From positions 252,802-316,801 of the IMG/VR virus record IMGVR_UViG_3300040801_002079: DNA of 64,000 bases, one strand, 5' to 3'. Made by a program: the position numbers and the translations under genes. Under the pieces are notes generated by a model, which was not told the origin of the DNA, made no database searches, and was given only the letters and a program-made list of their open reading frames with translations. Each line of letters opens with the position of its first letter. Position 1 is the first letter of the stretch. Of the stretch, positions 310-52,096 are shown piece by piece.

Positions 310-2507
310 TTCATTGTAACCGTTGTTAGTCCACCCTTGAGGGTCGCCTTGAGGGTCTTATTAAACGATGACTTAATTTCATCACGATGAGTGATGACGT
401 ACATATTCAAATCCTCATCCTTGGCAATCTTTTTAATCATCTTGGATGCAAGTTTAATTCCAAGATTACTTAATCCGGTGTCAAGACATTCATCCAGAAT
501 ACAGAAATTAATTTTCTGATGACGAGCCTGTACAACATCTCTAAACGCAAAGGCAAGAGCAATATTAATTCTAGCCTTTTGTCCACCCGATAGATTGGAG
601 AAACTGATGGGGTTATTAAACTGAGATATGGATATGGTCATGTCCTTTGTAAACTCAACCTTATGCAACATACCAATCGCGTCTAAATAATATCGCAATT
701 GTGTATTAAGAAGTGGTAGATTAATATTCAATAATTCTTGTCGTATATGACTATCCTTTCTGGTTAACAGCTTAAGTAAAAATTCCTGATGAGTTAATAG
801 CTTCTTAAGTTCATCAATCTCATCATCTCTAGGCTCATCAATGTTTGCAAATGCTTTCTCAAGCCGTTCAACTGTTTCGGTGTGAGGATTAGGCTCTGCT
901 GTTTTATCAGCCAGTGTTTTCTTAAGCTGATCAAGTCTAGACTGATCTGCATATAATGAATCCAGCGTTACCCCGTCCCTTTCCATCGAATCTGCTTCAG
1001 CATTCAGCACTCGTATATCCTCTTCCAATACATCAATTTCCTCTTGATGTTTTGTTAAATCAATTGTGGCATCCAGAGTGTACGGATTCTCTTGGCTTAT
1101 CAGCCTTTCGTAATCGGCTTGAGCGGCCTCAAATGCCCGCTTAGAATCTTCATATAATGATCTTGAATCAAAAATACAATCAACTGAATCAATATCCTTT
1201 AATAGTTTTTCATTATCATCATTAAGCTCAGTATTGGCATTTTCAATAGTCGTGTATTGTAACGCATATTGATTAAGCTCTGCTTCCTTCTCTTTAATTT
1301 TATCTTCATTCTCGTGATATGTCTGCTTACAGTATGGACATAATGCAGATTTTAACAATTTAACTTCCTCATTAAGGCCCTCAAGTGTCTCATAAATTTT
1401 AGATAATTCTGATTTATTGTCATTTATAGTTTTAACATTATTATCGTATTTTTCATTAAGCACATCCAGTTTATCCAATTGCTCAGATTGCTCGTTGAAA
1501 TCTATATCGTCATACTGCTTCAATAGGAGTTGTGACTTTTCTATATCGGACTTATGATCACTCTCCCATTTCTTTATATTAGTTTCAGTCTTTTTATATT
1601 CGGCTAATTTAAACTTGAGCTTATCAATCTCCGCTTCCTTTTCAGATACCGCAGATCGGATAATGCCAATAGTTTTCTGATTCTTGATTTCCCCAGCAAA
1701 GTCTATTAATTCCAATTGCTTAATATCATCTTTGGCTTTCTTAATCTGTGCCGCATGGTCTTCATCCCACTTCTCAACCGAACCTTTTGCCAGTTCAAGC
1801 TGCTCAGCATAGCGCGATGTCTCTTCTTCTATTCGTTCATTAAGCTCAATTAATCGTGTGATGGAAGCCTTGGTTTCCTTTATCTTGGGTTTAAGATTAT
1901 TAGCCTTTTCCGTTAATTCTTTTTGTCCAAATATTTCTTCAAGAATTGATGTTTGGCTTGTTTTGTTTGTGCTTGTCGCTGGAAGGTTTAAGAACGGCTC
2001 AAAGCTTGCACTATAAACCACGATGCGTACAAAAATATCAAAAGGCATTCTAAGTATATCTTCAGCGATATACTCATCGACAGACCTTCCTGCGGGGGTT
2101 TTAATGTTATCAGGTTTGGTTAAATCCTTCACGTTTTCAGCGGATGAGAACCTAACCCCATTATTGCCCGAACCGCCAAGGTCTTTATTCTTACGCCATC
2201 TTTCAACTTTGAAAAATGTTCCATTAACTTCAAAAATCACAGCAACATAAAGATTCTTCTTGTTTATGTTATTAATAATTTCATCCAGCTTCTTAAACTC
2301 AGAAACTGTCTTACCGTATAAAGCGAATGCTAAAGCGTTAAGGATGCTTGTTTTGCCTGCACCATTATTATCATGTTCACCATCGATAATAACATCAAGG
2401 TTTTCACCGATAATTAAGGTAGGTTCTTCTATCTCAAGAGGAATTACGGTCAAATTATCACCGTAAGACAGAAAGTTTCTTATATGTAATTCAATAAAGC
2501 GAATCAT
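306..2507 (-). CDS. gp46: Rad50/SbcC-type recombination ATPase (T4 gp46-like)
   Basis: RNFLSYG, Walker A NGAGKT, long coiled coil with CPYC zinc hook, signature LSGGQ, Walker B ILDECLD, H-loop ITH. Confidence 0.95.
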   Translation of the reverse strand: MIRFIELHIRNFLSYGDNLTVIPLEIEEPTLIIGENLDVIIDGEHDNNGAGKTSILNALAFALYGKTVSEFKKLDEIINNINKKNLYVAVIFEVNGTFFKVERWRKNKDLGGSGNNGVRFSSAENVKDLTKPDNIKTPAGRSVDEYIAEDILRMPFDIFVRIVVYSASFEPFLNLPATSTNKTSQTSILEEIFGQKELTEKANNLKPKIKETKASITRLIELNERIEEETSRYAEQLELAKGSVEKWDEDHAAQIKKAKDDIKQLELIDFAGEIKNQKTIGIIRSAVSEKEAEIDKLKFKLAEYKKTETNIKKWESDHKSDIEKSQLLLKQYDDIDFNEQSEQLDKLDVLNEKYDNNVKTINDNKSELSKIYETLEGLNEEVKLLKSALCPYCKQTYHENEDKIKEKEAELNQYALQYTTIENANTELNDDNEKLLKDIDSVDCIFDSRSLYEDSKRAFEAAQADYERLISQENPYTLDATIDLTKHQEEIDVLEEDIRVLNAEADSMERDGVTLDSLYADQSRLDQLKKTLADKTAEPNPHTETVERLEKAFANIDEPRDDEIDELKKLLTHQEFLLKLLTRKDSHIRQELLNINLPLLNTQLRYYLDAIGMLHKVEFTKDMTISISQFNNPISFSNLSGGQKARINIALAFAFRDVVQARHQKINFCILDECLDTGLSNLGIKLASKMIKKIAKDEDLNMYVITHRDEIKSSFNKTLKATLKGGLTTVTMN

Positions 2508-3532
2508 AATTTATCATACTCCGAGATAAGAAGATCATTTTCTATTTTATCGCTTTCAATGTTTTTTAACATTTTGCGAACCAGTGCGTTCGTGCTTTCA
2601 TTCTGAACATCTTCCTCAGTCAATTCACTATCAACAACCGTTACAGTCATAACTTCTTCTATAGTAAACTCTCTAAGTTGATGATCTGTAATCATTTTTT
2701 GCTTAAGTTCGCTATTTTCGCTAAAGGTTATATCGACATCTGCTACACATTTAACACGAGCATTATCTGAGAGAATATCGGGATTTTCATTTATTTCTGA
2801 AAGTTTTACTCGCATATATTTCGGACAATCTTCCCAATTAATATACTGAGTATCACCAGATTCATAATCATAAATTGCCATGCCACGATCATTATCGTTA
2901 GCGTCCCCAAAATCCATGGGGAAGGCGTTGCCAATATACGAAATGTTTTTAGAATGTTGTCGTTTATGAAAGTGTCCTGAAAATATTTTATCAGGAGCGG
3001 AGAATTTATCTGGATCAGGTCCCGATTCCTTTACAACGGTATCCCCTGTTAAAACAAATCCCTTAAACTCAAAATGCCCCATCCATATAGGAACATCGAA
3101 ATACCCAGATAAGTCTGCATATTCATGCTCAAATAAAAACGGGGAGTACAATGTTGGAACGATAGTATCTTCACTGATAAGGGGTTCATCAACTAGCACA
3201 AAATTTTCAAGGGATTTATATATGTATGAAGCAAATACCTCGCGGTTATCCCTGTAATACAAGTCATGGTTTCCAACAATAAAGTAAATGGGAATTCCGA
3301 CATCATTCAAAATAGATGCGCAATCCATGGCATATTTTGAAGTTAATGAATCGATAGCAGTTCTTTCTTCAAACCAGTCTCCGAGAAACACAATATGATC
3401 AACATCATACTTAACGCACTGGTCTTTAAACCAGAGCGTGAAACTCTTACAATCTTCATTATGTATTTTACTATTATTTTTACGTCCAAAGTGGATGTCT
3501 GTGAACATTCCAGCACGTTTTAATTTTTGCAT
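2504..3532 (-). CDS. gp47: Mre11/SbcD-type recombination nuclease (T4 gp47-like)
   Basis: Phosphoesterase motifs TDIHFG, LGDWF, VGNHD, GHFE, SGHFH; its stop overlaps the gp46 start. Confidence 0.95.
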   Translation of the reverse strand: MQKLKRAGMFTDIHFGRKNNSKIHNEDCKSFTLWFKDQCVKYDVDHIVFLGDWFEERTAIDSLTSKYAMDCASILNDVGIPIYFIVGNHDLYYRDNREVFASYIYKSLENFVLVDEPLISEDTIVPTLYSPFLFEHEYADLSGYFDVPIWMGHFEFKGFVLTGDTVVKESGPDPDKFSAPDKIFSGHFHKRQHSKNISYIGNAFPMDFGDANDNDRGMAIYDYESGDTQYINWEDCPKYMRVKLSEINENPDILSDNARVKCVADVDITFSENSELKQKMITDHQLREFTIEEVMTVTVVDSELTEEDVQNESTNALVRKMLKNIESDKIENDLLISEYDKL

Positions 3533-5791: not shown

Positions 5792-6538
5792 TTAATTAAG
5801 TAATGCTTCTTCTATTAATTCAAAATTATATTCTTTATCTTTAGCTAGTTTAACTATTATTTCATACATTATTTTTGCATCATTAATATCTTCAATTGGT
5901 TTAGGTATATTACTCATTGCGAATGCTTCTTCACATTCGTTGCGTAACACATTTACATACCAATCATCATGTAGGTTATCATTTTCCAATAATGAAAGCA
6001 TTATCTCATGCTTCTTAAACCTACCCCCTGAAGTTCCAGCACAATTTTTACAAGGAAGTTTTTTACCTTTAGTGTTAAATTGCTCTGGATAAGTAAGCTC
6101 ACACGCTTTAACTTTCAGAGTTGATGGTGAAACTACCACACCATGATATTCGATGTCAAGCATTAATTTGGTTCTTAATAGTGTACTGAACGTAACAAGA
6201 TCAATAAGAGGACCAGCAGCGGATGAATAGCTATAACCCTCAATGCAGATTATGGTTTCCTCTGCATCATTATTCAGGTTTAAAGCAATGTCGCTAATGA
6301 TATGGTCAGTTATCTCATTATATAATTTAAGTTTTGCTAGTTCGCTTTGCGAATACGGTAAACTCGTATCAACACCATCAAAGAATTTATAATCAACATA
6401 TTGATCCATGAGTTTGAACCATTTCTTCAAACTCCCAGTTTTCGTCTTTGCTAAAGCATTCGTAGTGTAAACGTAAAATCGACCATTTATACACACTGCC
6501 GTACATGACAGTGAGGGGTCTATCGTTATTATATTCAT
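5792..6538 (-). CDS. RuvC-like Holliday junction resolvase (RNase H fold)
   Basis: N-terminal IDPSLSCT, central IEGYSY, C-terminal EDINDA acidic motifs. Confidence 0.75.
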   Translation of the reverse strand: MNIITIDPSLSCTAVCINGRFYVYTTNALAKTKTGSLKKWFKLMDQYVDYKFFDGVDTSLPYSQSELAKLKLYNEITDHIISDIALNLNNDAEETIICIEGYSYSSAAGPLIDLVTFSTLLRTKLMLDIEYHGVVVSPSTLKVKACELTYPEQFNTKGKKLPCKNCAGTSGGRFKKHEIMLSLLENDNLHDDWYVNVLRNECEEAFAMSNIPKPIEDINDAKIMYEIIVKLAKDKEYNFELIEEALLN

Positions 6539-6579: not shown

Positions 6580-6957
6580 TCAGTAGTTAACTACTATAAC
6601 ATTCAACCCATTATCTTTGGCATACTTAATCATGTGGGCAGTGCCACGAGATTTACCATCCCAGAATGCAATTAATGAATCGGCATAATCACCCATCTGC
6701 TCGTTGCGTATGGGTCCAGCGGCCTTTCCATGTTTATCCCATTCTGCTGGAAACAGCATTACACCAACATGATTTTCTTTAGCCCAGCGTTCACCTAAAC
6801 TATCGGCACCACGAGCACCACCTGATACAATCTCTATTTCATCAGCATGATTGCCATTCCATATAGCATTTCGAAAATTTTCTAATGTTTTTGATAGTTT
6901 CTCGTAGTCATTAAAGTCTCTGCCACCAGCAACTATTACTTTGTGAAAATTAAACAT
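6580..6957 (-). CDS. YspA/SLOG-family (DUF2493-like) protein
   Basis: VIVAGGRDF, VSGGARGAD, AAGPIRN, FWDGKSRGTAHMI. Confidence 0.9.
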   Translation of the reverse strand: MFNFHKVIVAGGRDFNDYEKLSKTLENFRNAIWNGNHADEIEIVSGGARGADSLGERWAKENHVGVMLFPAEWDKHGKAAGPIRNEQMGDYADSLIAFWDGKSRGTAHMIKYAKDNGLNVIVVNY

Positions 6958-6966
6958 ATCCCTATT

Positions 6967-7197
6967 TTAATATATCGGGTTGGGTTTTTTCAACTCATTT
7001 TTTATATGTTCTGTTTGGAACTCGTTAACCAAGTCCTTTTCAAAGGGGGTCATTTCCATTAATTCAGCATATGGTATGGAACCCCTACCGAAGTAAGCCA
7101 TAGAGATGCAAGATTGAACGATTGCTCTAATCTCACCCCTCAACCTAGCAATTTCCTTATTAATTATTGTTTTGTCTTCTTGGTTGAGGGCACGGTA
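6967..7197 (-). CDS. -1-frame extension (76 aa) of the gp26-like protein; gp51/GT-like domain, not in the ORF track
   Basis: Open frame YRALNQEDKTIINKEIARLRGEIRAIVQSCISMAYFGRGSIPYAELMEMTPFEKDLVNEFQTEHIKNELKKPNPIY* starts at the slippery T TTT TTT and fills the gap up to the next gene's RBS. Confidence 0.75.
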   Translation of the reverse strand, partial: YRALNQEDKTIINKEIARLRGEIRAIVQSCISMAYFGRGSIPYAELMEMTPFEKDLVNEFQTEHIKNELKKPNPIY

Positions 7198-7203
7198 AAA
7201 AAA
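7137..7203 (-). promoter_or_regulatory. Programmed -1 ribosomal frameshift signal
   Basis: Heptamer U UUU UUU (7203-7197), 6-nt spacer, perfect 9-bp stem CCCUCAACC (7190-7182)/GGUUGAGGG (7145-7137). Confidence 0.75.
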
Positions 7204-8123
7204 TGAATCGGATTTAACGGAATCTCCGTTTTACTCTCATATGAACACTTTTTACACTTAAACTCATATTCCTTGGATGTTCCCCAATCATTAGCAACTT
7301 GGATATATTCTTGCATCTCGTCAATGACTGGAGCCTCACATGCTAGCGCCCATTCACGAATATGCTCTTTATTTGTAACTCCATTAACCGATTTGATGAC
7401 AGACAACAGTGTGTCAATAATGAAATCAGCCATTTCCTCAGGAGTTTCAATTTTTGTCATATCGTACTGGAACAATGTTAACATTTCTTTAAATGTTGAA
7501 GGACGTAGCTCAATCTCTTCACCAGTGGCTACAGTAAATTTGTAGTCATCCAGATTTGGATCAAACGGCACAGTATCACGTAAGAACTTATTAAGGTTTA
7601 TTTGATAAGTTGGTTTAACATTTACAAGTTCTGTGTATGAAGATTCCTCACCTTCTCTTCTCTGATCAATGCGATGCTCATCGGTTGACGATTCTGGAAT
7701 TATTTCTTTATCATTTCCACACTTGGGGCAATTCCAGTAAATGTCCAACTCTGATCCGTAAGTTACCATTCTTAAGCAGACTAATAGGTAATCTACATCA
7801 TTGGATAACAAATCCATCGGTTTTTTAATTTGAGGCATACACCGCTGAAATACCTTTTCAATAGCTGAACCTTGAAATAGCATATCAGGTGAACGCATTG
7901 TAATCTCATCAACTGTTGTCATGGGATAAACTAATACTTCACCATTAACAACCTCCTCATCCAGTTCACCATTAGTATACGTAACACCTCCAGATGGAAG
8001 TCTAAATGTCTCCGGGGGCATCTTGTTGAAACGTGCCATTAATGGATTGGGTGGAGGAGCGTATGTTCTGGTAGCCTCTTCTGTTTCAGGCTTAACTTCG
8101 TTTACATGTTCGTTCATCATCAA
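7164..8123 (-). CDS. T4 gp26-like baseplate hub / tail assembly chaperone
   Basis: FRLPSGG, VYPMTTVDE, DVDYLLVCLRMVTYG, CPKC and CKKC pairs, LNPIHFF near the end; late promoter upstream. Confidence 0.75.
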   Translation of the reverse strand: MMMNEHVNEVKPETEEATRTYAPPPNPLMARFNKMPPETFRLPSGGVTYTNGELDEEVVNGEVLVYPMTTVDEITMRSPDMLFQGSAIEKVFQRCMPQIKKPMDLLSNDVDYLLVCLRMVTYGSELDIYWNCPKCGNDKEIIPESSTDEHRIDQRREGEESSYTELVNVKPTYQINLNKFLRDTVPFDPNLDDYKFTVATGEEIELRPSTFKEMLTLFQYDMTKIETPEEMADFIIDTLLSVIKSVNGVTNKEHIREWALACEAPVIDEMQEYIQVANDWGTSKEYEFKCKKCSYESKTEIPLNPIHFFTVPSTKKTKQ

Positions 8124-8244: not shown

Positions 8245-8895
8245 ATGGGTATAATACGGGACGCTGCTTTTAATAGAGATGGTGGAATTATAGCGAATCA
8301 GCAACGATTTGTTCAGCAGCAACAAAGAGAGGACCATAGCTTGGGTGGTTCTCAAGAAGAAATTAGATTAATAGCCCGAGATGGTCAGGAAGGTCAACAC
8401 GGGGTAAGATTATTCGTCACACCCGAATTAAATGAAACACGTACTGTAAATTATCAAGAAATATCGGAAATGCGACAAGCCGGTGGAATATTGATCTATA
8501 TTGGTACTCAGGCTAGGACTTATCAAATAACAGCCCGGATGGTCTCAAGATCACAAAGAGAGGCAGACTTAACATACAAATATACACACCTATTAAAATC
8601 ATGGACTGTCCCAAGAAAGGGCGGCGGAGTGTTTGACGATGAAAACGCACCCGAAGTTTTAAAACTATATGGTTATGGACAGGAGCGTCAAATAAGAGGG
8701 GTTCCTGTTGTTATAACATCGCTGAGCATTGATTTCCCGTCTGCTGTAACCTACGTAACAACTAGGGATGGAAAGGCCCATGTCCCCGTTATACAAACAT
8801 TCACAATATCATTGAAAGAAGCCAGAAGACCGGAAGAGTTACAGGATAATTTTGACCTCACTGCGTACAAACAGGGCACATTGAAAAATTGGTAA
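8245..8895 (+). CDS. Baseplate / tail-tube-initiator-like structural protein
   Basis: Tube-like pattern (RTVNY, ARTYQIT, APEVLKLYGYG, VPVVITSLSIDFP, ISLKE); directly upstream of the gp53-like gene. Confidence 0.6.
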   Translation: MGIIRDAAFNRDGGIIANQQRFVQQQQREDHSLGGSQEEIRLIARDGQEGQHGVRLFVTPELNETRTVNYQEISEMRQAGGILIYIGTQARTYQITARMVSRSQREADLTYKYTHLLKSWTVPRKGGGVFDDENAPEVLKLYGYGQERQIRGVPVVITSLSIDFPSAVTYVTTRDGKAHVPVIQTFTISLKEARRPEELQDNFDLTAYKQGTLKNW

Positions 8896-16784: not shown

Positions 16785-19700
16785 GTGAATAATTCGGATT
16801 ATAAAAAAAATAGGATAAACATTAATGAATTGCTACCGGACCTTATTTCAAATACTGAAATAAGTAAAAGTATTCAAGAAAATCTGTTTAATCGATTCCT
16901 ATCTAAAGATGAATACCAGAGAGTTATAGGTGTTATAGGAACTCCCGACCCAAGAGACCCAACTTCATTTAGAATTCCAGAAAACAATGAATACCGAGAA
17001 AATTATCAGTTGCAGCCCGTTGCTCATGCAAAGGTTGGCTCAGTAGATTACCATTTGTCGTTTCATGATTTGATGAGACGATTGGAGTATTTGGGAGTAA
17101 ATACTGAAAGATTTGATGAGTGGGGCAATTCGATGCAATTCAATTGGGTCCCACCAATTGACATTGATAAAATTATAAACTATCAAGATTATTTTTGGGT
17201 ATCGGAAAATTTTGATGACGTACCACAATATATAACGGTTAAAAACTTGTGCACTTGGGCGCAAGCTCGTTCTATACAAGCAAAGAAGACTGTTATTTCT
17301 GTACAACAGCCCATTGACATCAACTCAATAAATGAAAATATAATCGAATTATCAGGAAATGTTGTTTCCAAGTATAGTCCGGGAGAACACTTAATAGTTT
17401 ACAATAGTAATGAGAGTGAATATGTCGTTGTTACAATTAAAACCGTAGATTTTAATCTATCATCATCTAATACTGATATTATTGTTGACACTAGATTATC
17501 ATCTGATCTCAATACCGCAGCAAGAATCGAATTTCCCATAATTGGAGTTATATCCGCAGAAAAATCAATAATTTTAGAGGGGGATTTGACAAATATTTTC
17601 GCTCCGGAATATATATTCTCTTTAACTAAGTCTATTGGGACGGTAACAACATACCATACGGTTTCAAGCGCATCATATGATACACTGCAAAATCAAACAA
17701 CAGTTGTACTGAAAGAAAACCTTGAAGCCTTAAACTGGAAATATGCTTCAACCTTGCCTCAAATCTTAATGAATGATGAGGAGGCTAGAAGCAGATGTAA
17801 TGAAAATTATACTAGCACCTTGTTTACACAATGGAAAGACGAATACATTGGAAGGCTAATATGGTCACCTAATAAATTAATTATTCAATCTTCTGGATCG
17901 GGACGAACAGAGCTAGGGGAAGATTCTTTTTATGAAGAGAGTTTACTACTTGTAACGTCCGGGGTTAAGAGAGGGGATGTATTAAATATATTAGAAGGTA
18001 AAAGTGAAGGCCAGCATGAAATCATAAGCGTTAATCAAAATCCGGTAACGGGGAGCGTATTGGGGGTTGATCCAAGCGCATTCTTCTTTACAGAATATAA
18101 TGTATCATATCAGATTTATAGGGAACAAACCACGGCTCTAATAACACGATCCGAAGATGATGTACCATCATCTCCAGAAATATATGACCTATGGATAAAT
18201 TCAGATGATGGTAATTTATATCAGTGGACTGGAAGCACATGGAGATTGGTTGCAAACAACATTGATGTACTTGTCGCTTCTTTATATGGCAGACACCTAC
18301 TTGACTTCAATGAAGATGATGCGTGGGCCAAAGAAAATAAATGGATTCACAAAACACAGCTTAGTACATTTGAATCTGCCACACGAGCGCAAATTCCAAT
18401 AATTGAATACGAACCATATATTAAAAAATCAACAACGTCATATTCTAGCAAGGAATGGAAATATAGGGTTGATTCAACTAACGAATACTTTGAAACTGAT
18501 GCGTCACCCAGAATGTTTGAAATTCAGGACATTCGCATAACAGAGAGTGGTAATGAATTTTCATTCATGACGGATACAAAAATATTACTTCATGAAAAAT
18601 TTGGCAACTTGGTTGACGATATTCAAATTGGTGAAAGGATAGAATTTAATGACTTTTCAGAAAACATCAGCACAAAAATTGTTAAAGATGTTGAATTTTA
18701 TAGAGTGTTTCCGAAGTCCAGACACCAAACGGTAATAACATTAACAACCCCCGTAAATGATCCATTTGATCTACCTGTAGGGGCACACATTGGTCCACAG
18801 GAAACATCACTGGGTGATCCTTGGATTGGTATAGATGAAGGGCACTGGCTATTTGAAGGAGTTGTTAATATTCAGGCATCAAGTATTGAGCCTGAGCCAA
18901 ACCCAATGCTTAACGAACTATTTGAAAGTAAGTATGTTCCGAAACAAACCGGCGCACGAACGCTTGATATACAATCATTAGATTTTGAAGACATTGAATC
19001 ATTAGAAGTTATAGAAGCACTGGAAACTATAGTACAGGGTGCATACAACTATGAAACAAATATTGGACCTGTATGGCAAACATTTTCTCTCCCGGATAGT
19101 ATACAAATAACCGCTCCAAGGTTCGTATTTGACCCCACACTTCATACATTAGCACTATATGAAGATTATCAAGAGGGTGACATGCGTGTATACATAAATG
19201 GTGTCAGACAGTATGGCAACTTCTTTGATATTAGATCAGAAATATATCCAGATTTTGTTGGTGGCATTCAGTTTGATGATGATACGGTTATTACTAACCT
19301 AGATGTTATACGAATTGAACTGGGCGAATATGCTAAGTATGAAATAGGAAAAAGGGCGGTCACTATTCCAACTGAAGCGGGACTAGAGCCATACAATTTA
19401 GTAGATGTTCGGGCAATGGAGCAAATAAAAACTGATACAAATCAGTACATTTATTTTAACGTTTACGATGTTGACACTCAGCCGAAAATATTTGCTAATA
19501 CTATATTCAAGTATAATGAATCCGATGAATATTCCGTAAGCCCATATATTCTGGAGCGTGTTGTTGCCGATCCAGCCACCAAAACCTATGAATTTGTTAA
19601 CGAATTGTTCAACCATGAAACAGAAGAACTATATTGTTATTATGACGCAAAGTATGTTGGTAACGAACTTCAAAATCTATGGAAGAGAGGATTAAATAAC

Positions 19701-22700
19701 GAACAGTACGTACCTAAAAAAATAGATAACACTGATTACTGGAAGCTTCCAAATCAGATGTACTATAACCCACAGCATAGAAATAGAAGAGTTGTATCTT
19801 TTCAGGATGTATATAGACATTTTAGAAGTATAGCCCAGTCCCAAACCACTCCCGGAATATATTCAAATGTAACAAACCTATTTCATCTTGATGATAGGGT
19901 CAATTTCGGCTTGGGTGGAACAATAAAAGAACATAATGATAATTTTGATATCTTGATATCAACCATCTTTTTAAACAATGTAAATCCTATAAAACTCTAT
20001 CAGTTTGCGCATGATCAATATCGTTTAAACTTTAAATGGTTGGAAGAAAAATTTATCGATAGTTTTGAAATGCTAGTAAGTGATACTCAGTCCAACACGA
20101 CTGATACACTATCCGCCACTATTTCAGAATATTTAATAGATGCATTTGAAACGAATGATAAACTATCTCAATGGTTTGGGGATAGCTCCACATATAATGA
20201 AGCAACTGATACTGGAATAAAAAACTGGATTGCAACAACTCCATATTTTGGAATGAATTATCTGTACATGCCGTACATGAATATTGATGAAAGATATGGA
20301 ATTTATGAATTGTTCCATCATGATGGTCACCGTAGACAAATAGAGTTATCAGCTTCACTGAAGGAGCAATTAAATAAACGTCTATTGGCTCTAGATATAG
20401 CGTCAGAACAAGTAGTTAATAATGATCTTGATCCATTTCCCTTCAGCATAGAGGGTCGTGCTGTAAAACGCGGAGATTATCTGGTTAGGACTGTCCTACA
20501 GGATAAAACTCGTAAAGTATACAGAAGAAACTACAATAACGTATGGGAAGAATTTCCATATGAAAAGATATTAGCAGAAACATATCTGGATGTCGAGAAA
20601 AGGCTTTATGATAACTGCCCATCATATGATGAGCTTGTTTTCGATTTTTCAACGGTTGAGAATGACGTTGAATATTCTTCCACGCTTGAAAAGCAATTCG
20701 TTAAATACGGCAATTCCAGAGGTATAGATTATCTATACGCCAACGAAATATTTTACACTGGGACTGACCCATTCACTTGGAATTATTATTATACCCCAAT
20801 ACCGTCACATCCCGTGACAGGAATAGAAAGTTCAGATGTTGCGGGTAGCTGGCAAGCATTATATGAGAAAGTTTATAATACCCCATACCCACACCTTGAA
20901 CCATGGAAATTGCAAGGATATAGGGATTTGCCGGATTGGTGGCTAAATCGTTATAAGGTAACAGATGGTACCAGAAGATGGTCATCCGAAATGTGGGATA
21001 ATGTTCTAGCTGGAAGAGTTCCCACTGGACGAACCCTTCCTGACGGTGAAATATCGGCTGGCGCAAGAAATGAAGTAAATTCTTATGATTACGTATCTGT
21101 AAATATCGACAATTTTCCAACACATGATGGATACGATTCGGATGAATTGCTTCCACCATATTGGAATTCCAGCAATTCCGAACTAAGTACAGTTAGGTCA
21201 TTATATGATCCAGATGCTAATGATTTCATACAATCACCCGATCTGGACTTTGATTGGGGACAAAATGGAACACAAGAATGGAAATGGAGTGCATCCGCTC
21301 AAAGAATTTATGATGAGTTAATAACAGCATTTAAATTGCAGCCATTAAAATTCACAGCAAGAACATACGGAATAGAAAAGGCTGAGATAAATTGCCTTCA
21401 AATTGATTCCTTAACAAAGTCTCCATACGCCGTTAGAAAAACTCTATTTCATGGAGATATAGACCCAGACACTAATAGTGTGATTACAATTAATGGTGCT
21501 GGGCAATGGTATTCACACTACAACAGAAGCCATAATTTTGATGGCGAATCATCAGAATATAGAACACTATGGAAAGATTGGGATATCCCCCTATCATATG
21601 AATTTAATGCATTCATTGATACGCCCAGCTTCAGAATAGAAAATGCAAATTTCGACATAACAACCAAAGATTATAGCGTGGAAGTTAAAAAGACTCACGG
21701 TATAGATTTAAAATCAATCTTTGGGCTAAGGGCAAGAATATTATCAGTTCCTTCTAAGTATGCAAAGAACCGCGATTATGGTTTAGGGTGGACCGCAGAG
21801 TTCTTTAACACATCCCCTGATAATAATGATATAAATGTTTATGGAACAGAAAACTATGACTATAGGGTAAAATCGGATAATGAGACCCTGCGCTTATTTA
21901 GTTACCCAATATCTGGAGCAGATGTATCCAGACAAAGAGGTCTACAAGTAGCGAATTATAATCAACAAGCACTATTAAGCGACGAGACACTATATCCATC
22001 AACCGTAACTCCATTTTTTGCTGACATTTTAATTGATGGAATAAAGCAAATTGAATTGGTTGTGCGTGGCACAGAAGTTAAAACTATATCGGATTTGCTG
22101 GATTCTCTTAATTTACAGCTTGGAACCAACGCTACTGCCACACTTGAACAGGGTAACATTTATATAAGAAGTGATACTACCGGGGCAAGTTCTTCCATTG
22201 AAATAACAGATAGAGGATTGTTTACAACATCACATCAATCATATAGTTCTTTACAGCCGCCAACAACAGAGCCTTTAGAATTTAATCGTGTATTTACAAT
22301 TAAAGGAAACTACACATCGGTATTTCCTGAAAAGAGCGAAGTTGTAATAACAGATTCTACTAATTATAACGGAACATATACCGTGTTTGGAACATTTTAT
22401 GATGTGCCAAATAATGAAACACATATTCACGTAGATGAATTTGTAACAATACCAGATACCACAGTTGATGGATTTATAGAACCTGCCGATGCACTAACTT
22501 TACCGGAAGAGTGGGTGACTGGAACAGAATTATTCTTAAATGGAAACTCCGATGCGCCTCCACCATTAGATAATACACTACCGTATTACATCATTCGATT
22601 AAGCGATAGAGAATTTAAATTGGCTGAAACTGAAGTTCTAGCATATAAGGGGACAGCAATATCCGGAATCTCCGACAGTTTTATAAACACCATGATAGGC

Positions 22701-25700
22701 AGGCTACAGCGCACATTCCGAGCATTGAGCGGTCAAACGATTGATACGGTATGGCGGAGACACTATCCAGATAAACGAGTTGTCGAGTCTCACCCCAATC
22801 TAGTCAGTATATCCGGCATACAAAACATGATTGATTTTGTAACGGGATATGAAGATTACTTATATGATCGCGGATTTGTATGTAAAAATCCAGATGGGGA
22901 TAATTATGACCTATCTACTGGAAGAACTAATGATTGGCAGTTTGAATTAGAGAAATTTATATCTAACCTTTATAGGCTAAGAAGTAGAAGACAAGAAGAG
23001 CCATTGGAATATAAAGTATCAGTTAATAGTGTGGACAATAACATAACACTATTGGATGGTGCATACTCAAGTTGGCAGAATGGTACGCGGGTTGTAATTG
23101 TGGAAGGAGATGATGAGGCCCAATTACCCCAACCATTTGATTCAACACTATCGAACGCATTCCCCTATTACATTATACGAAGCGCTCATGATAATATTTT
23201 CCAGTTAGCCTATACCCATTATGATGCAATGAGGGGCAATGCCATTGATATCATAGATGATGGAGTGGGGGATATAAGGCTTAAAGTCTTTAAGAGATTG
23301 ACAAATGCTCCAGAATTAGAAATAAACCCACTAAAATCATCAATATGGGTTAAAAATGATCAGGGTGTTATGAATGATGTATTTCATGGCACAAACCTTG
23401 ATGTTGTCACATCACAAGCTGTATTTGATAACAATAAAAGGGAAATGAACAGCAATGAAATAATTGTATTCAGACAGGATCATGAAAATAAAATAACAAT
23501 AACAAATGAATTACGCAATTATACAATAGATGCTAAGGTTCCCATCAACAAATATATGGCGGGAATGAATTTATATTATGATGGATATGAGCATATCATA
23601 ACATTTGAAGAATATTCAACCGACGACTCTTTGATATACGATCCATTCTTGGGCGTATCAACACTTAACTTCAGAATCGAATTTAACCGACAGAATGATA
23701 CTACCTTTAGGCCAAATGTTGGTGGATACACATTACTTGATAATGAATTATTGCAAAATCTAGAGTCCTCTGTAAATGACGTTAGAATGATGTACGACAC
23801 ACATAAGACACTGGAAACTAAGCAGTTAACAGAATATGTTCGCAAATCATTAGGATTCGATGAAAAGGATTATATGAATGACATTTCATTAAATCCTAAA
23901 ACACAGTTCCTATTTTATAAAGGAATGATTCAGAATAAGGGTACAAATTTTGCCGTAGATGCATTCACAAATCAAACGCTATTTGAAACTGCCGAAATCG
24001 ATGAATTCTGGGCGTATAAGCTTGGAGAATTTGGTGGAGCAAGAGAGCTTAGTTATCCTGAAATGATACTAACCCCCGATGATGTTGTTCGCAGAGAACT
24101 AAGATTGGAGTTCTTATTGCCGGATGAAGGAAGTCTACATTCGTCATTTGTTCCGGTTAGAATAACTGATCCGGAAAGATGGTGGGACCAGCCAGATCAA
24201 CTACAAACAATAAAACCATATGACGGATTCTGGTTCAATATTGATGTTCTTGAGCAAATCGGAAATTCGGAATACAACATAGAATACATTAATGGTAATT
24301 ACATCTTAGATTTGGGTAAGATTGTTAACTCTGTAATTTTGACACATTACAATCCCGAAAGTGAACTCGTTGAACAACTGCAAGAGAATTTACATTTCGT
24401 CTATATGAGTAATAGGGCGATAAAGTTCATAAGAGATGCGGATGATGTTCCCGTTGCAGATTTGCCCCCAGACTCTGCGTTAAAATATCAAGACCTAACT
24501 GTTAATGTGGTAACATATCACTATGATGCCATAAACCCAGCTAAAGTTATTGACAGAGACTATGACCTTGGTAATTATGATGATACGGGAATTGATGCTA
24601 AGGCCGCAAAAGTTATAACGGAAGTGCCGGTTTGGAATCCAGCCTTTGGACAATATTCACATATTGTAGATTTTGTTACTAATATAAAGAGTAGCGAAGA
24701 CCAAGCAAACTATACCAATTATCCAGACGGCACTTCCCCCGATTTAACACCATGGCTATTTGACATGGTTGGTACCGTATGGATGGACAATAGTATAGAG
24801 CATTATGTTCCATATTATGACAAAACTGCCATGCCTAATTTCGATAAAAGAATCTTCTTATGGGGCACATTGGCTGAATGGGGCGATATAGCACTATATG
24901 AGTGGTCACAATCACTACTTCCACCAGAAGAATGGGACGGAGACGGTTCCCCTAGAACACTAATCTATAAAAATGATGCAGCAGACCCTGTAAATGATGA
25001 TCCCATTTGGGTTGAAAATCCAGACCCCGATGTGCATGAAGATTATATTGCAGGCTTGGTTACTCCAACCAATAGCACATCCTTAACTGGTGAAATAGAG
25101 GCATATATAAATGGTGAATATGATCAAACCCTAACTATAAACACCCCGGATGATTTTGTAACATATGCTCTAACTTTGCCGCAAGAGGTTCATGTTCATT
25201 TGATGCATCGGGGGTATGTCCCAACAGAGGATGATCTAAGTGATAATCTATATAAGTATGATACGCCATACTGCAAAGAGACTAGGTATAATTCGGATAG
25301 TAATGAACCATATGATGTATATTATTTCTGGGTAAGAAACCGTGAAACAAAGAGAGAATTTCAGAATGGCAGCGTAACAGTAGTTGAAGCGGAAAAGATA
25401 TCTAAGAATATGGATTCGCCGTATATGATTATTGAGGGATTGCGTAGCAATGAATTTGGTTATGGAATAATTTACGGCGCAACATTTGATCCATTTGAAT
25501 ATGATGTTCCAAATAGATATACTCACGCAATAATAAAAGGACTAAGAGGAACTGTTAAGGGACATTCTCGCTATACGTTAAGGTTCACACGAGACTTTAA
25601 CTTGAGAGATGAGATAGATGATGATCTAAATCTAAAAAATGTCCACGAGGAATGGAAGTTATTTAGAGAAAAGCAGTTTTCCAAGATTGATATCGATTTA

Positions 25701-26999
25701 TGGGAAAAAATAATCGAATCTATGATAAATCATCCTGTATCTAATAAGGTTGTGGATGTGGATACAACAATTCCTACGCTCAATAGAATTCTATATGATG
25801 ACCTTTATCAAAAAGATACAAAATATGGATTAGGAACTGAACAGGTATTAACTGACGGCGAACTTGCCATACAGACGGTCACATCCATTCTGGATGATCC
25901 AGATAGGGAATTTATCGGCATAAACATCGATGAGTTTAGGCAGAATAATGGGTTTACAACGCAAACGGATATTGTAAACTCAATGTATGAAATTTATAAT
26001 TCATTCTCTGTTGTTGATGTCAATTATATATTTTTCCAAGTTTTACTAGATGCATTCAGCCTTAAGAAGGAATTTAAAGACATATTTAAAACCTCTTGGG
26101 TTGCATTGCAAATTACTCAAAATATTACGTCACCTGAGAATATTGAACTTGATATTGTTGAAGTTGAAGAAGGCGGGGATTGTTCGCTACCCATAAGTAA
26201 TATACCAGATGAAGAGATTTCACCACCTCTCCCATCCGCATCAATGACCCCGACTCCAACGGTTACGCCAACCATGACTCCAACGGTTACGCCCACAACT
26301 ACCGTTACCCCAACCGTTACCCCGACAAATACGGTTACACCAACAAATACTGTAACTCCAACTGTTACTGTTACACCAACACTAAGTGCTACAGTTACGC
26401 CTACTGTAACAGTCACTCCGACAAATACTGTAACTCCAACACAAACTGCTACGGTTACGCCAACTCCAACACAAACTGCTGCGGTTACCCCAACAGTGAC
26501 CCCAACAGTGACTCCCACAATAACCCCAACGGTTACACCGACTCAAACTGTTACACCTACGGTAACGGCTACGCAAACTGTTACACCAACCGTTACACCA
26601 ACAAATACGGTTACACCAACTCAAACAGTGACTCCGACTCAGACTGTAACTCCAACAAACACGGTTACACCTACGGTTACACCAACACAAACTGTTACCC
26701 CGACAAATACGGTTACACCTACGGTAACGGCTACGCAAACAGTGACTCCGACCCAAACCGTTACACCTACTGTTACACCGACAAATACGGTTACACCAAC
26801 TCAAACCGTTACACCTACTATTACACCGACTCAAACAGTATCCCCAACGGTTACACCAACTCAAACCGTTACACCTACTGTTACACCGACAAATACGGTT
26901 ACACCAACTCAAACCGTTACACCTACTGTTACACCGACAAATACGGTTACACCAACTCAAACCGTTACACCTACAATAACACCTACCCAATCTGGATAA
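16785..26999 (+). CDS. Giant virion (baseplate-associated) structural protein, 3404 aa, with C-terminal Thr-Pro tail
   Basis: GTG start with AGAGGA RBS and late promoter; lies between gp6- and gp15-like genes; WVPPIDIDKIINYQDYFW; two PYYIIR..FxLA modules. Confidence 0.7.
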   Translation: MNNSDYKKNRININELLPDLISNTEISKSIQENLFNRFLSKDEYQRVIGVIGTPDPRDPTSFRIPENNEYRENYQLQPVAHAKVGSVDYHLSFHDLMRRLEYLGVNTERFDEWGNSMQFNWVPPIDIDKIINYQDYFWVSENFDDVPQYITVKNLCTWAQARSIQAKKTVISVQQPIDINSINENIIELSGNVVSKYSPGEHLIVYNSNESEYVVVTIKTVDFNLSSSNTDIIVDTRLSSDLNTAARIEFPIIGVISAEKSIILEGDLTNIFAPEYIFSLTKSIGTVTTYHTVSSASYDTLQNQTTVVLKENLEALNWKYASTLPQILMNDEEARSRCNENYTSTLFTQWKDEYIGRLIWSPNKLIIQSSGSGRTELGEDSFYEESLLLVTSGVKRGDVLNILEGKSEGQHEIISVNQNPVTGSVLGVDPSAFFFTEYNVSYQIYREQTTALITRSEDDVPSSPEIYDLWINSDDGNLYQWTGSTWRLVANNIDVLVASLYGRHLLDFNEDDAWAKENKWIHKTQLSTFESATRAQIPIIEYEPYIKKSTTSYSSKEWKYRVDSTNEYFETDASPRMFEIQDIRITESGNEFSFMTDTKILLHEKFGNLVDDIQIGERIEFNDFSENISTKIVKDVEFYRVFPKSRHQTVITLTTPVNDPFDLPVGAHIGPQETSLGDPWIGIDEGHWLFEGVVNIQASSIEPEPNPMLNELFESKYVPKQTGARTLDIQSLDFEDIESLEVIEALETIVQGAYNYETNIGPVWQTFSLPDSIQITAPRFVFDPTLHTLALYEDYQEGDMRVYINGVRQYGNFFDIRSEIYPDFVGGIQFDDDTVITNLDVIRIELGEYAKYEIGKRAVTIPTEAGLEPYNLVDVRAMEQIKTDTNQYIYFNVYDVDTQPKIFANTIFKYNESDEYSVSPYILERVVADPATKTYEFVNELFNHETEELYCYYDAKYVGNELQNLWKRGLNNEQYVPKKIDNTDYWKLPNQMYYNPQHRNRRVVSFQDVYRHFRSIAQSQTTPGIYSNVTNLFHLDDRVNFGLGGTIKEHNDNFDILISTIFLNNVNPIKLYQFAHDQYRLNFKWLEEKFIDSFEMLVSDTQSNTTDTLSATISEYLIDAFETNDKLSQWFGDSSTYNEATDTGIKNWIATTPYFGMNYLYMPYMNIDERYGIYELFHHDGHRRQIELSASLKEQLNKRLLALDIASEQVVNNDLDPFPFSIEGRAVKRGDYLVRTVLQDKTRKVYRRNYNNVWEEFPYEKILAETYLDVEKRLYDNCPSYDELVFDFSTVENDVEYSSTLEKQFVKYGNSRGIDYLYANEIFYTGTDPFTWNYYYTPIPSHPVTGIESSDVAGSWQALYEKVYNTPYPHLEPWKLQGYRDLPDWWLNRYKVTDGTRRWSSEMWDNVLAGRVPTGRTLPDGEISAGARNEVNSYDYVSVNIDNFPTHDGYDSDELLPPYWNSSNSELSTVRSLYDPDANDFIQSPDLDFDWGQNGTQEWKWSASAQRIYDELITAFKLQPLKFTARTYGIEKAEINCLQIDSLTKSPYAVRKTLFHGDIDPDTNSVITINGAGQWYSHYNRSHNFDGESSEYRTLWKDWDIPLSYEFNAFIDTPSFRIENANFDITTKDYSVEVKKTHGIDLKSIFGLRARILSVPSKYAKNRDYGLGWTAEFFNTSPDNNDINVYGTENYDYRVKSDNETLRLFSYPISGADVSRQRGLQVANYNQQALLSDETLYPSTVTPFFADILIDGIKQIELVVRGTEVKTISDLLDSLNLQLGTNATATLEQGNIYIRSDTTGASSSIEITDRGLFTTSHQSYSSLQPPTTEPLEFNRVFTIKGNYTSVFPEKSEVVITDSTNYNGTYTVFGTFYDVPNNETHIHVDEFVTIPDTTVDGFIEPADALTLPEEWVTGTELFLNGNSDAPPPLDNTLPYYIIRLSDREFKLAETEVLAYKGTAISGISDSFINTMIGRLQRTFRALSGQTIDTVWRRHYPDKRVVESHPNLVSISGIQNMIDFVTGYEDYLYDRGFVCKNPDGDNYDLSTGRTNDWQFELEKFISNLYRLRSRRQEEPLEYKVSVNSVDNNITLLDGAYSSWQNGTRVVIVEGDDEAQLPQPFDSTLSNAFPYYIIRSAHDNIFQLAYTHYDAMRGNAIDIIDDGVGDIRLKVFKRLTNAPELEINPLKSSIWVKNDQGVMNDVFHGTNLDVVTSQAVFDNNKREMNSNEIIVFRQDHENKITITNELRNYTIDAKVPINKYMAGMNLYYDGYEHIITFEEYSTDDSLIYDPFLGVSTLNFRIEFNRQNDTTFRPNVGGYTLLDNELLQNLESSVNDVRMMYDTHKTLETKQLTEYVRKSLGFDEKDYMNDISLNPKTQFLFYKGMIQNKGTNFAVDAFTNQTLFETAEIDEFWAYKLGEFGGARELSYPEMILTPDDVVRRELRLEFLLPDEGSLHSSFVPVRITDPERWWDQPDQLQTIKPYDGFWFNIDVLEQIGNSEYNIEYINGNYILDLGKIVNSVILTHYNPESELVEQLQENLHFVYMSNRAIKFIRDADDVPVADLPPDSALKYQDLTVNVVTYHYDAINPAKVIDRDYDLGNYDDTGIDAKAAKVITEVPVWNPAFGQYSHIVDFVTNIKSSEDQANYTNYPDGTSPDLTPWLFDMVGTVWMDNSIEHYVPYYDKTAMPNFDKRIFLWGTLAEWGDIALYEWSQSLLPPEEWDGDGSPRTLIYKNDAADPVNDDPIWVENPDPDVHEDYIAGLVTPTNSTSLTGEIEAYINGEYDQTLTINTPDDFVTYALTLPQEVHVHLMHRGYVPTEDDLSDNLYKYDTPYCKETRYNSDSNEPYDVYYFWVRNRETKREFQNGSVTVVEAEKISKNMDSPYMIIEGLRSNEFGYGIIYGATFDPFEYDVPNRYTHAIIKGLRGTVKGHSRYTLRFTRDFNLRDEIDDDLNLKNVHEEWKLFREKQFSKIDIDLWEKIIESMINHPVSNKVVDVDTTIPTLNRILYDDLYQKDTKYGLGTEQVLTDGELAIQTVTSILDDPDREFIGINIDEFRQNNGFTTQTDIVNSMYEIYNSFSVVDVNYIFFQVLLDAFSLKKEFKDIFKTSWVALQITQNITSPENIELDIVEVEEGGDCSLPISNIPDEEISPPLPSASMTPTPTVTPTMTPTVTPTTTVTPTVTPTNTVTPTNTVTPTVTVTPTLSATVTPTVTVTPTNTVTPTQTATVTPTPTQTAAVTPTVTPTVTPTITPTVTPTQTVTPTVTATQTVTPTVTPTNTVTPTQTVTPTQTVTPTNTVTPTVTPTQTVTPTNTVTPTVTATQTVTPTQTVTPTVTPTNTVTPTQTVTPTITPTQTVSPTVTPTQTVTPTVTPTNTVTPTQTVTPTVTPTNTVTPTQTVTPTITPTQSG
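26244..26990 (+). repeat. Coding low-complexity repeat (TPTV/TPTQTV/TPTNTV)n, about 250 aa
   Basis: Direct translation; near-perfect 48-nt units at the 3' end. Confidence 0.95.
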
Positions 27000-51991: not shown

Positions 51992-52096
51992 TAAAGGCTC
52001 CTGAAATAATATTTATACCTAACTGTATTTATATAAAAAGATGCAGTGCGTAAATTCAGCTATAAATATATAAAAGAGTAATTTAAGGAGACTTTT

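Follow-up and report, generated by a model that had tools for sequence, protein, structure and literature searches.

The locus lies in a 64,000-nucleotide stretch of IMG/VR record IMGVR_UViG_3300040801_002079 (positions 252,802 to 316,801 of that record; hereafter the window), which belongs to a roughly 317-kb jumbo myovirus. On the minus strand, a gp26-like ORF is followed by an overlapping -1 frame ORF, and the features found at their junction are collected in Table 1. A megablast search of the region against 50,697 phage records found no near relative. The 0-frame product matched Pfam PF12322 (T4_baseplate) at 48.8 bits against a cut-off of 24.5 (E 9.3e-13) and phrog_150 (baseplate hub) at 1.4e-14, the remaining Pfam and PHROG hits being weak zinc-ribbon and other sub-threshold ones; residues C132, C135, C290, C293, P305, F308 and F309 were invariant in 13 sequences. 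The neighbors are a SLOG/YspA gene and a RuvC-like gene downstream, and diverging from the gene are baseplate genes resembling gp53, gp5, gp25 and gp6; no tape-measure gene is adjacent.

Table 1. Coordinates of the features at the frame junction, in window positions.
Feature	Position	Strand	Description
Late-promoter-like motif	8156-8149	-	TATAAATA, T4-type, about 26-32 nt upstream of the start codons
Shine-Dalgarno and candidate starts	8128-8115	-	AGAGG at 8128-8124; TTG 8123, ATG 8120, ATG 8117
0-frame ORF	8123-7164	-	Short form, gp26-like baseplate-hub assembly protein with two CxxC pairs; 319 aa from TTG
0-frame stop	7166-7164	-	TAA, 10 codons after FF
Slippery heptamer	7203-7197	-	U_UUU_UUU, in phase, at the invariant FF motif
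Spacer	7196-7191	-	ACCGUG, 6 nt
Predicted stem, 5' arm	7190-7182	-	CCCTCAACC; 9 perfect pairs with the 3' arm
Predicted loop	7181-7146	-	36 nt, holds the 0-frame stop
Predicted stem, 3' arm	7145-7137	-	GGTTGAGGG; contains the TTG at 7143
-1 frame extension	7197-6967	-	76 codons from TAC (7197) plus stop (6969-6967); predicted helical; no usable start codon before codon 19
Next gene	starts at 6957

The first-pass annotation had proposed, from the sequence alone, a -1 frameshift joining a gp26-like chaperone to a gp51/GT-like domain, and it was correct in every detail that could be checked. The 0 frame reads CAT TTT TTT through the run of seven T residues, the first of which is the third base of CAT; the predicted junction is ...PIHFF|YR, and the -1 frame contains YAELMEMTPFE. 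Counted from the TTG, the products are 319 aa and 309+76 = 385 aa, but by spacing from the Shine-Dalgarno sequence the two ATG codons are the more likely starts, giving 317-318 and 383-384 aa. The length of the T run was identical, with no gaps, in contigs of two DNA runs of the source sample. Of the 12 copies of the late-promoter-like motif in the window, 11 lie 12-51 nt upstream of an ORF start on the same strand (coordinates compared by hand), whereas the copy at 52061 is 377 nt from the next listed ORF start. The exact motif was found upstream of the gene in 16 of 75 homologous loci, against 0.3% of background 200-nt windows.

Comparison with related loci indicated that the arrangement is more than chance. 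An in-phase X_XXY_YYZ heptamer was present at the same FF motif in all 12 GenBank jumbo phages examined and in 80 of 80 IMG/VR loci, the latter comprising 68 T_TTT_TTC, 7 T_TTT_TTT and 5 A_AAT_TTT; all 92 also have an early 0-frame stop and a 70-95-codon -1 ORF conserved from its first codon, whereas the +1 frame closes after 0-45 codons. In 80 distinct loci, the wobble base before FF is T in 80 of 80, although the residue there is N, S, D, H, A, T, V or Y, and the first Phe codon is TTT in 80 of 80. In the A_AAT_TTT variants, a T-to-C change destroys the usual heptamer and leaves only T5, yet an upstream in-phase heptamer gives the identical product ..VNFFHGFL; this argues for ribosomal slippage and against transcriptional slippage. 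In phage A4, the predicted junction would read ...DPTHFF|RSQLLFSNPEEIK.

The -1 peptide shows constraint from the heptamer onward: its L4 is invariant in 66 sequences, and column entropy has -1-frame codon periodicity immediately after the heptamer. No conserved start codon was found for the -1 ORF. In the window, there is no start codon between the upstream -1 stop and codon 19, and across loci the first possible start is scattered from -20 to +66 codons, with one locus having none. The first-pass annotation had stated that an independent ATG and RBS in homologues would refute its reading, and that test therefore fails to refute it.

ViennaRNA returned exactly the 9-bp stem of Table 1 as both the MFE and the centroid structure (dG -22.7 kcal/mol, z -2.57), and 3 of 200 shuffles folded as well. 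Because the 3' arm differs in position and register between clades, a single column-wise covariation count on the 78-sequence alignment was replaced by an anchored duplex-energy test with control positions in the same genes. The 16 nt starting 3 nt after the heptamer pair with the next 78 nt at a mean of -14.1 kcal/mol, compared to -7.5 at 3042 control positions, and 79% of loci fall in the lowest 10% of their own controls; the corresponding values for the window are -19.1 and a mean of -7.1. In homologues, the first paired base lies about 4-7 nt after the heptamer. The 3' partner is clade-specific and shows two-sided changes: CCCTCC/GGAGGG, CCCTCAA/TTGAGGG and CCATCAA/TTGATGG; GCCTCCT/AGGAGGC and GCCTCTT/AAGAGGC; GCTTCT/AGAAGC and ACTTCT/AGAAGT. 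The stem nevertheless remains a prediction: its arms lie in coding sequence rich in complementary codons (CUU/CUC against GAA/GAG), so part of the pairing signal could come from composition, and related sequences also inflate the Mann-Whitney P value.

Pfam and PHROG scans of the 76-aa extension alone gave no hit, and tblastn of the extension alone found only two Stenotrophomonas phages. A profile of the -1 domain, however, found 802 relatives, and about 21 of its top 150 hits are 319-351-aa PF12322 proteins that carry the domain in frame at their C-terminus; in the two whose DNA was read, the junction has no slippery T run. An HMM built only from these natural long forms matched the 0-frame ORF of the window (HMM positions 21-101 and 179-260) and then, collinearly, the -1 ORF (HMM positions 258-331; 4e-09), switching frame at the heptamer. 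All six in-frame long-form loci with enough flank have an adjacent short-form paralogue, whereas frameshift-type loci have a single gene in 91 of 92 and in 73 of 75 cases.

T4 gp26 and gp51 both match PF12322 and align with each other (BLASTP 2e-6), and the gp51 family carries an extra C-terminal domain (PF28602 in newer Pfam). By hhalign, this domain aligned to the -1 extension with P 6.4e-5 to 6.7e-5, and none of 200 column-permuted controls (mean 9.8, sd 1.9) reached the real score of 27.3; the order is collinear, and the motif LL..P(D/E)E(I/V) is shared. The similarity is remote, however, covering about 32-35 columns with an hhalign probability of only 58-64%. Full-length hhalign comparisons of the jumbo-phage 0-frame proteins and of the natural long forms with the gp51 profile were weak and local (E about 1e-4 over the first zinc-ribbon region), and the link to gp51 therefore rests on the Pfam model and on the domain-level test. 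Sequence searches of the PDB gave nothing, a Foldseek search of a confident long-form model against the PDB found nothing at E below 0.2, and BFVD fold hits confirmed the family only.

Taken together, we consider it highly likely that this is a conserved programmed -1 ribosomal frameshift cassette at the 3' end of a single gp26/gp51-family baseplate-hub assembly gene, although frameshifting itself is inferred from sequence comparison and not observed, and the metatranscriptome runs of the source sample hold no contigs covering the site. Under this model, ribosomes that remain in frame 0 make the short, gp26-like form, whereas a fraction pause over U_UUU_UUU, with tRNA-Phe in both the P and A sites, because a stem begins 6 nt downstream; these slip back one base and make a long form of about 385 aa, whose extra helical C-terminal domain would correspond to the one that separates T4 gp51 from gp26. 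The slip ratio would then fix the stoichiometry of the two hub-assembly proteins. The efficiency of the shift is likewise inferred, and the chaperone function is extrapolated from T4 genetics.

The long form could instead be made by transcriptional slippage, RNA polymerase adding one U in the run, and the junction peptide could not distinguish the two mechanisms because the protein would be identical. The window has T7 and RsoM2USA has T9, and homopolymer runs are known slippage sites. However, 65 of 80 distinct loci have only T6, and four distinct loci have only T5 after A3, which is probably short for efficient slippage by a bacterial RNA polymerase; in the T5 variants, what is retained is an in-phase A_AAU_UUU heptamer. 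The predicted stem is conserved in position across clades, as ribosomal -1 frameshifting would require, and the DNA contigs show no length heterogeneity. We thus regard transcriptional slippage as unlikely, though not excluded.

Two ordinary genes, the downstream one translated from an internal ATG, GTG or TTG into a 40-76-aa protein and the T run simply encoding Phe-Phe, appear less likely still. It is true that 10 of the 12 GenBank records inspected annotate a separate small hypothetical protein, that Xoo-sp13 and XacN1 have an ATG 19 codons into the -1 ORF, and that gene callers produce many 58-98-aa ORFs for this domain. Nevertheless, RsoM2USA and PA5oct have no annotated ORF here at all, the peptide is conserved upstream of every candidate start, the invariant wobble T is not required by Phe-Phe coding, and the domain occurs fused in frame to PF12322 in natural proteins. 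Homopolymers are error-prone and the window comes from a metagenome assembly, but a sequencing or assembly error, or a decaying pseudogene, is only a remote possibility because the same frame break is present in 12 independently sequenced cultured phages and in about 150 further metagenomic loci, the T7 run was the same in both DNA runs, and the -1 ORF is under coding constraint.

Programmed -1 frameshifting in phage tail assembly is textbook for G/GT, but our full-text literature searches returned no description of it for the gp26/gp51 family, and none of the 12 GenBank records annotates it. If it is real, about 100 deposited jumbo-phage genomes are mis-annotated at this locus, showing either a spurious small hypothetical protein or nothing at all. 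What gp26 and gp51 do in T4 morphogenesis, and why both are needed, is an old question; the evidence suggests that they are the short and long forms of one design and that their ratio matters, and the occurrence of either one gene with a slip site or two adjacent genes without one is natural-experiment evidence that both forms are required. More tentatively, and in our view somewhat less likely than not, the T4 proteins would be the resolved, duplicated version of an ancestral one-gene, two-product frameshift system that would still operate in the RaK2, XacN1, PA5oct and Atu_ph07 groups of jumbo phages and in many uncultured relatives. The pair would then be the contractile-tail hub counterpart of lambda G/GT, setting stoichiometry, with the shared N-domain holding one hub or tape-measure component and the helical tail of the long form recruiting another; evolution would have arrived twice, in unrelated protein folds, at a frameshift-made short and long chaperone for tail initiation.

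In T4, the short form, gp26 (208 aa), contains CPECGK and ends ...KEFFELL at the motif that is the slip site here, whereas the long form, gp51 (249 aa), continues past the equivalent Phe as ...F-KLLVNPDEI... and ...Y..S..KMIPAER; both are listed as hub assembly chaperones (PMC3004832). In both phages, the genes lie next to the hub genes and diverge from them. T4, however, uses two separate, divergently transcribed paralogous genes and has no slippery site (GAG TTC TTT GAG), a few uncultured lineages also having two paralogous genes, and the jumbo-phage extension is about 16 residues longer between its two conserved motifs. The internal in-frame start of T4 gene 26 (gp26', annotated in NC_000866) is another way of obtaining two nested products from a gp26-family gene, but those products share a C-terminus rather than an N-terminus and arise by initiation rather than by recoding.

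The G/GT comparison that was drawn in the first-pass annotation, taken here with lambda gpG/gpGT-type tail assembly chaperones (Xu, Hendrix and Duda, 2004), holds for mechanism and logic only. In each, one gene would give a short product and a C-terminally extended product through a -1 slip near its 3' end, both would be assembly factors for the tail machinery, and the feature is conserved across very divergent sequences. There is no sequence or fold similarity by the searches above, PF12322 being the only Pfam family above its gathering threshold; the protein has two CxxC pairs, its gene sits beside baseplate hub and wedge genes rather than between the tube and tape-measure genes, the slippery site is U_UUU_UUY rather than, as generally described, the G_GGA_AAG type, and a tape-measure-chaperone role is not shown. 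Cassettes such as those usually cited for E. coli dnaX and HIV-1 gag-pol (U_UUU_UUA) have in common with this one an in-phase X_XXY_YYZ heptamer, a spacer of 5-9 nt and a downstream stem, and the U-rich heptamer is decoded by tRNA-Phe; here, however, the predicted stem encloses a long loop of about 25-45 nt that holds the 0-frame stop, and its 3' partner has moved between clades.

The ORF on the minus strand encodes 319 amino acids if counted from TTG, but an AGAGG Shine-Dalgarno sequence followed by TTG ATG ATG makes one of the two ATG codons the more likely start. The protein matches Pfam PF12322 "T4_baseplate" (E 9.3e-13; 48.8 bits against a 24.5 cut-off) and also PHROG 150 "baseplate hub". 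Near the 3' end of the gene, frame 0 reads CAT TTT TTT ACC; the first T of the T7 run is the third base of a codon, and the heptamer is thus an in-phase U_UUU_UUU. Frame 0 stops 10 codons later. A 6-nt spacer follows the heptamer, after which CCCTCAACC pairs perfectly with GGTTGAGGG; the 36-nt loop contains the stop codon, and the 3' arm contains the TTG listed as a start by the ORF finder. ViennaRNA returned this stem as both the MFE and the centroid structure (dG -22.7 kcal/mol, z -2.57). The -1 frame, beginning at TAC, is open for 76 codons, whereas upstream of the slip site it has a stop 12 codons back and no ATG, GTG or TTG. Every element described in the first-pass annotation, which proposed a -1 frameshift at this run followed by a spacer, a stem enclosing the 0-frame stop and a 76-codon extension, is present. 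Contigs from two DNA runs of the source sample reproduce the T7 run exactly; metatranscriptome runs from that sample contained nothing of the region.

Coordinates of features in the window and in related loci
Sequence	Feature	Coordinates	Strand	Remark
Window	TATAAATA motif upstream of the gp26-like gene	8156-8149	-
Window	Other exact TATAAATA motifs	31199, 31879, 33859, 42400, 42406(-), 43563, 52010(-), 52026(-), 52061, 54136(-), 63939(-)
Window	0-frame ORF	8123-7164	-	319 aa from TTG
Window	More likely ATG starts	8120 or 8117	-
Window	Acidic insertion	7650-7760	-	residues about 137-172 of the gp26-like protein
Window	T7 run (heptamer)	7203-7197	-
Window	5' arm of predicted stem	7190-7182	-	CCCTCAACC
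Window	0-frame stop	7166-7164	-
Window	3' arm of predicted stem	7145-7137	-	GGTTGAGGG
Window	-1 frame, from TAC	from 7197 to the stop at 6969-6967	-	76 codons
Window	SLOG/YspA-family protein	6580-6957	-	PF10686, 4.5e-19
Window	RuvC-like resolvase	5792-6538	-	phrog_159
Window	First gene of the divergent operon	8245-8895	+	216 aa
Window	Giant ORF	16785-26999	+	3404 aa
Window	Giant ORF	54145-63918	-	3257 aa
L004 (RsoM2USA)	-1 ORF	2267-2519		not annotated in GenBank
L009 (PA5oct)	-1 ORF	2352-2576		not annotated in GenBank
L095	In-phase T_TTT_TTA at the end of the short gene	2760-2790
L156	Additional upstream PF12322 paralogue	1929-2966
L162 (same contig as L081)	Additional upstream PF12322 paralogue	2082-2939
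L104	Additional upstream PF12322 paralogue	1971-2942
L107	Additional upstream PF12322 paralogue	1931-2920

The 12 exact TATAAATA motifs in the window are no more numerous than expected by chance (9.3 expected). However, 11 of them lie 12-51 nt upstream of an ORF start on the matching strand, whereas the copy at 52061 is 377 nt from the next listed ORF start; this fits T4-type late promoters in this jumbo phage. The SLOG/YspA-family and RuvC-like genes lie directly downstream of the -1 ORF on the same strand, and because no terminator was predicted on this strand between the genes, they may be co-transcribed with the hub chaperone gene. The window gene diverges from an operon of baseplate genes resembling gp53, gp5, gp25 and gp6, and, as the first-pass annotation had noted, no tape-measure gene is adjacent. 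The first gene of that operon matches only the C-terminal part of a roughly 500-aa "virion structural protein" PHROG; in several cultured relatives, the gene at this position is annotated as a much larger protein of about 700-850 aa.

A tblastn search found the protein in 98 deposited jumbo-phage genomes, including XacN1, Xoo-sp13, RAS14/CM1, RsoM2USA, Atu_ph07, Phosso, the RaK2/121Q/GAP32/CBB/BF group, PA5oct and a Vibrio phage, and most alignments end at query residue 309-310, which is the FF motif. Twelve of these loci were retrieved, and a scan of IMG/VR reported 592 relatives and returned 80 loci, one of which is the window itself on a 316.8-kb contig. All 92 loci share the same layout: an in-phase X_XXY_YYZ heptamer sits at the invariant (D/N)P..FF motif, the 0-frame tail is 1-14 codons long, the -1 ORF is 70-95 codons long, and the +1 frame is closed. 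The window protein has a roughly 35-residue acidic insertion just after the first CxxC pair, which all 12 cultured-phage homologues aligned lack, and a unique 20-residue N-terminal extension. Among the IMG/VR loci, 68 have T_TTT_TTC, seven have T_TTT_TTT and five have A_AAT_TTT. In the last group, a T-to-C change destroys the usual heptamer and leaves only five Ts, but an in-phase heptamer three bases upstream then gives exactly the same protein, ..VNFFHGFL. In 80 distinct loci, the base before the first Phe codon is T in 80 of 80, although the residue at that position is N, S, D, H, A, T, V or Y, each of which has a C-ending synonym; the first Phe codon is likewise TTT in 80 of 80.

The -1 peptide is conserved from the codon right after the slip. 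Its consensus begins R.RLL...PEE(I/V), L4 is invariant in 66 sequences, and column entropy shows the -1-frame codon pattern, with third position above first above second, already in the first 23 nt after the heptamer. In contrast, the first possible start codon in the -1 ORF lies anywhere from 20 codons before the slip to 66 codons after it, and one locus has none; GenBank annotators called a small ORF with differing starts in 10 records and nothing in those of RsoM2USA and PA5oct. A profile of 66 -1 extensions, searched against 1.84 billion proteins, gave 802 hits. Most are 58-98-aa gene-caller ORFs, but about 21 of the top 150 are proteins of 319-351 aa with the domain in frame at the C-terminus of a PF12322 domain. 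Their junctions read ..xF-RxKLI..EEI, and in the two loci whose DNA was read (designated L094 and L095), there is no slippery T run at that position. An HMM built only from these natural single-ORF proteins matches the 0-frame ORF of the window, with HMM positions 21-101 and 179-260 aligning to residues 60-140 and 234-310, and then matches the -1 ORF with HMM positions 258-331 (E 4e-09); the frame changes exactly at the heptamer.

To assess downstream RNA structure, the 16 nt that begin 3 nt after the heptamer were taken from each of 78 distinct loci, and their best duplex with the next 78 nt was computed. The mean was -14.1 kcal/mol, compared with -7.5 at 3042 control positions inside the same genes, and 79% of loci fell in the lowest 10% of their own controls; the sequences are related, however, and the nominal P value of 6e-37 is thus inflated. 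The 5' arm keeps its place about 4-7 nt after the heptamer, but the 3' partner differs by clade, giving loops of 3-74 nt with a median of 25. RsoM2USA has a T9 run followed by a compact 11-bp hairpin instead of the long-loop stem. Two-sided changes keep the pairing: CCCTCC/GGAGGG, CCCTCAA/TTGAGGG, CCCTCAACC/GGTTGAGGG (the window), CCATCAA/TTGATGG and CCATCAAGTCC/GGACTTGATGG; GCCTCCT/AGGAGGC and GCCTCTT/AAGAGGC; and GCTTCT/AGAAGC and ACTTCT/AGAAGT. These substitutions change amino acids on both arms, for example Leu to Ile paired with Glu or Arg to Met, and conservation of the protein therefore does not explain them. In one clade (loci L034, L044, L063, L067, L071, L074, L081 and L093; about 10-20 and 75-85 nt after the heptamer), the 5' arm is GCCUCCU, which resembles the anti-Shine-Dalgarno sequence, and its partner is a Shine-Dalgarno-like AGGAGGC encoding K-E-A.

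Locus L095 carries a 276-aa short form immediately followed by a 334-aa in-frame long form (27% identity, E 2e-26). The short form ends ..NFLSST and keeps a vestigial in-phase T_TTT_TTA, but the -1 frame closes after one codon; this looks like a relic of the frameshift state. A second IMG/VR scan, using the long-form profile, returned 80 loci, of which 73 are frameshift-type with a single family gene and two are frameshift-type with an extra upstream paralogue. The remaining five have an in-frame long form, and all five have an adjacent short-form paralogue, upstream in some and downstream in others. In the first set, 91 of 92 loci have exactly one N-domain ORF and one extension ORF in another frame, and the window contains a single family gene within its 64 kb. 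This complementary pattern is what one expects if both a short and a long product are needed, but no P value was attached because the in-frame loci may share ancestry. Some lineages carry an additional upstream PF12322 paralogue (loci L104, L107, L156 and L162); in the first three of these, its C-terminal region lacks the second Cys pair and ends ..SSF(L/I)P or ..SNFFA. The family has therefore duplicated repeatedly.

The best reading of these data, inferred from sequence alone and without expression data, is ribosomal -1 frameshifting on U_UUU_UUY, stimulated by the downstream stem. Transcriptional slippage would give the same protein and cannot be excluded for the T7-T9 variants, but it fits poorly with the T6 majority, with the T5 variants that keep a canonical heptamer, and with the position-conserved stem. 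Independent initiation of the -1 ORF, a sequencing error and a pseudogene are each contradicted by several lines of evidence from the conserved layout, the -1 peptide and the complementary distribution of one-gene and two-gene loci.

An AlphaFold2 prediction for a natural long form gave a confident single-unit model (pLDDT 86.6, pTM 0.83) in which the extension forms four helices. Matches to the model in BFVD are T4-type baseplate hub proteins from many myoviruses, but nothing in the PDB resembles it, either by sequence or by fold. The family is therefore structurally uncharacterised and unrelated to known G/GT-type chaperones. Full-text searches found no description of a frameshift in this family: the genome papers recovered for RaK2, PA5oct, XacN1, Atu_ph07 and RsoM2USA contain neither "frameshift" nor "slippery", the PRFect paper does not mention baseplate or hub, and no GenBank record inspected annotates a frameshift here. 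The mechanism itself is of a known kind, but the gene family, the biological setting and the link made between T4 gp26 and gp51 appear to be new.

Function is inferred from T4, where gp26 and gp51 are both listed as hub assembly chaperones, and gp51 is essential but absent from the particle (PMC3004832). In T4, gene 26 (208 aa) and gene 51 (249 aa) are transcribed divergently next to the hub genes 27, 28 and 29; both proteins match PF12322 over their first 200 or so residues, and they align with each other (BLASTP 2e-6). gp26 ends ...KEFFELL with non-slippery codons (GAG TTC TTT GAG), whereas gp51 continues past the equivalent Phe with ...F-KLLVNPDEIF...NYSLNSISKMIPAER..., a stretch that newer Pfam treats as a separate domain, PF28602. 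The jumbo-phage extension shares the LL..P(D/E)E(I/V) and Y..(L/I).M.P.ER motifs in the same order. In two comparisons, hhalign aligned the extension to the last 30 or so residues of gp51 at P 6.4e-5 and 6.7e-5; for the latter, the score averaged 9.8 (sd 1.9, maximum 16) in 200 column-permuted controls, against 27.3 for the real alignment. We consider it probable, although not certain, that the long form is the gp51 equivalent and the short form the gp26 equivalent.
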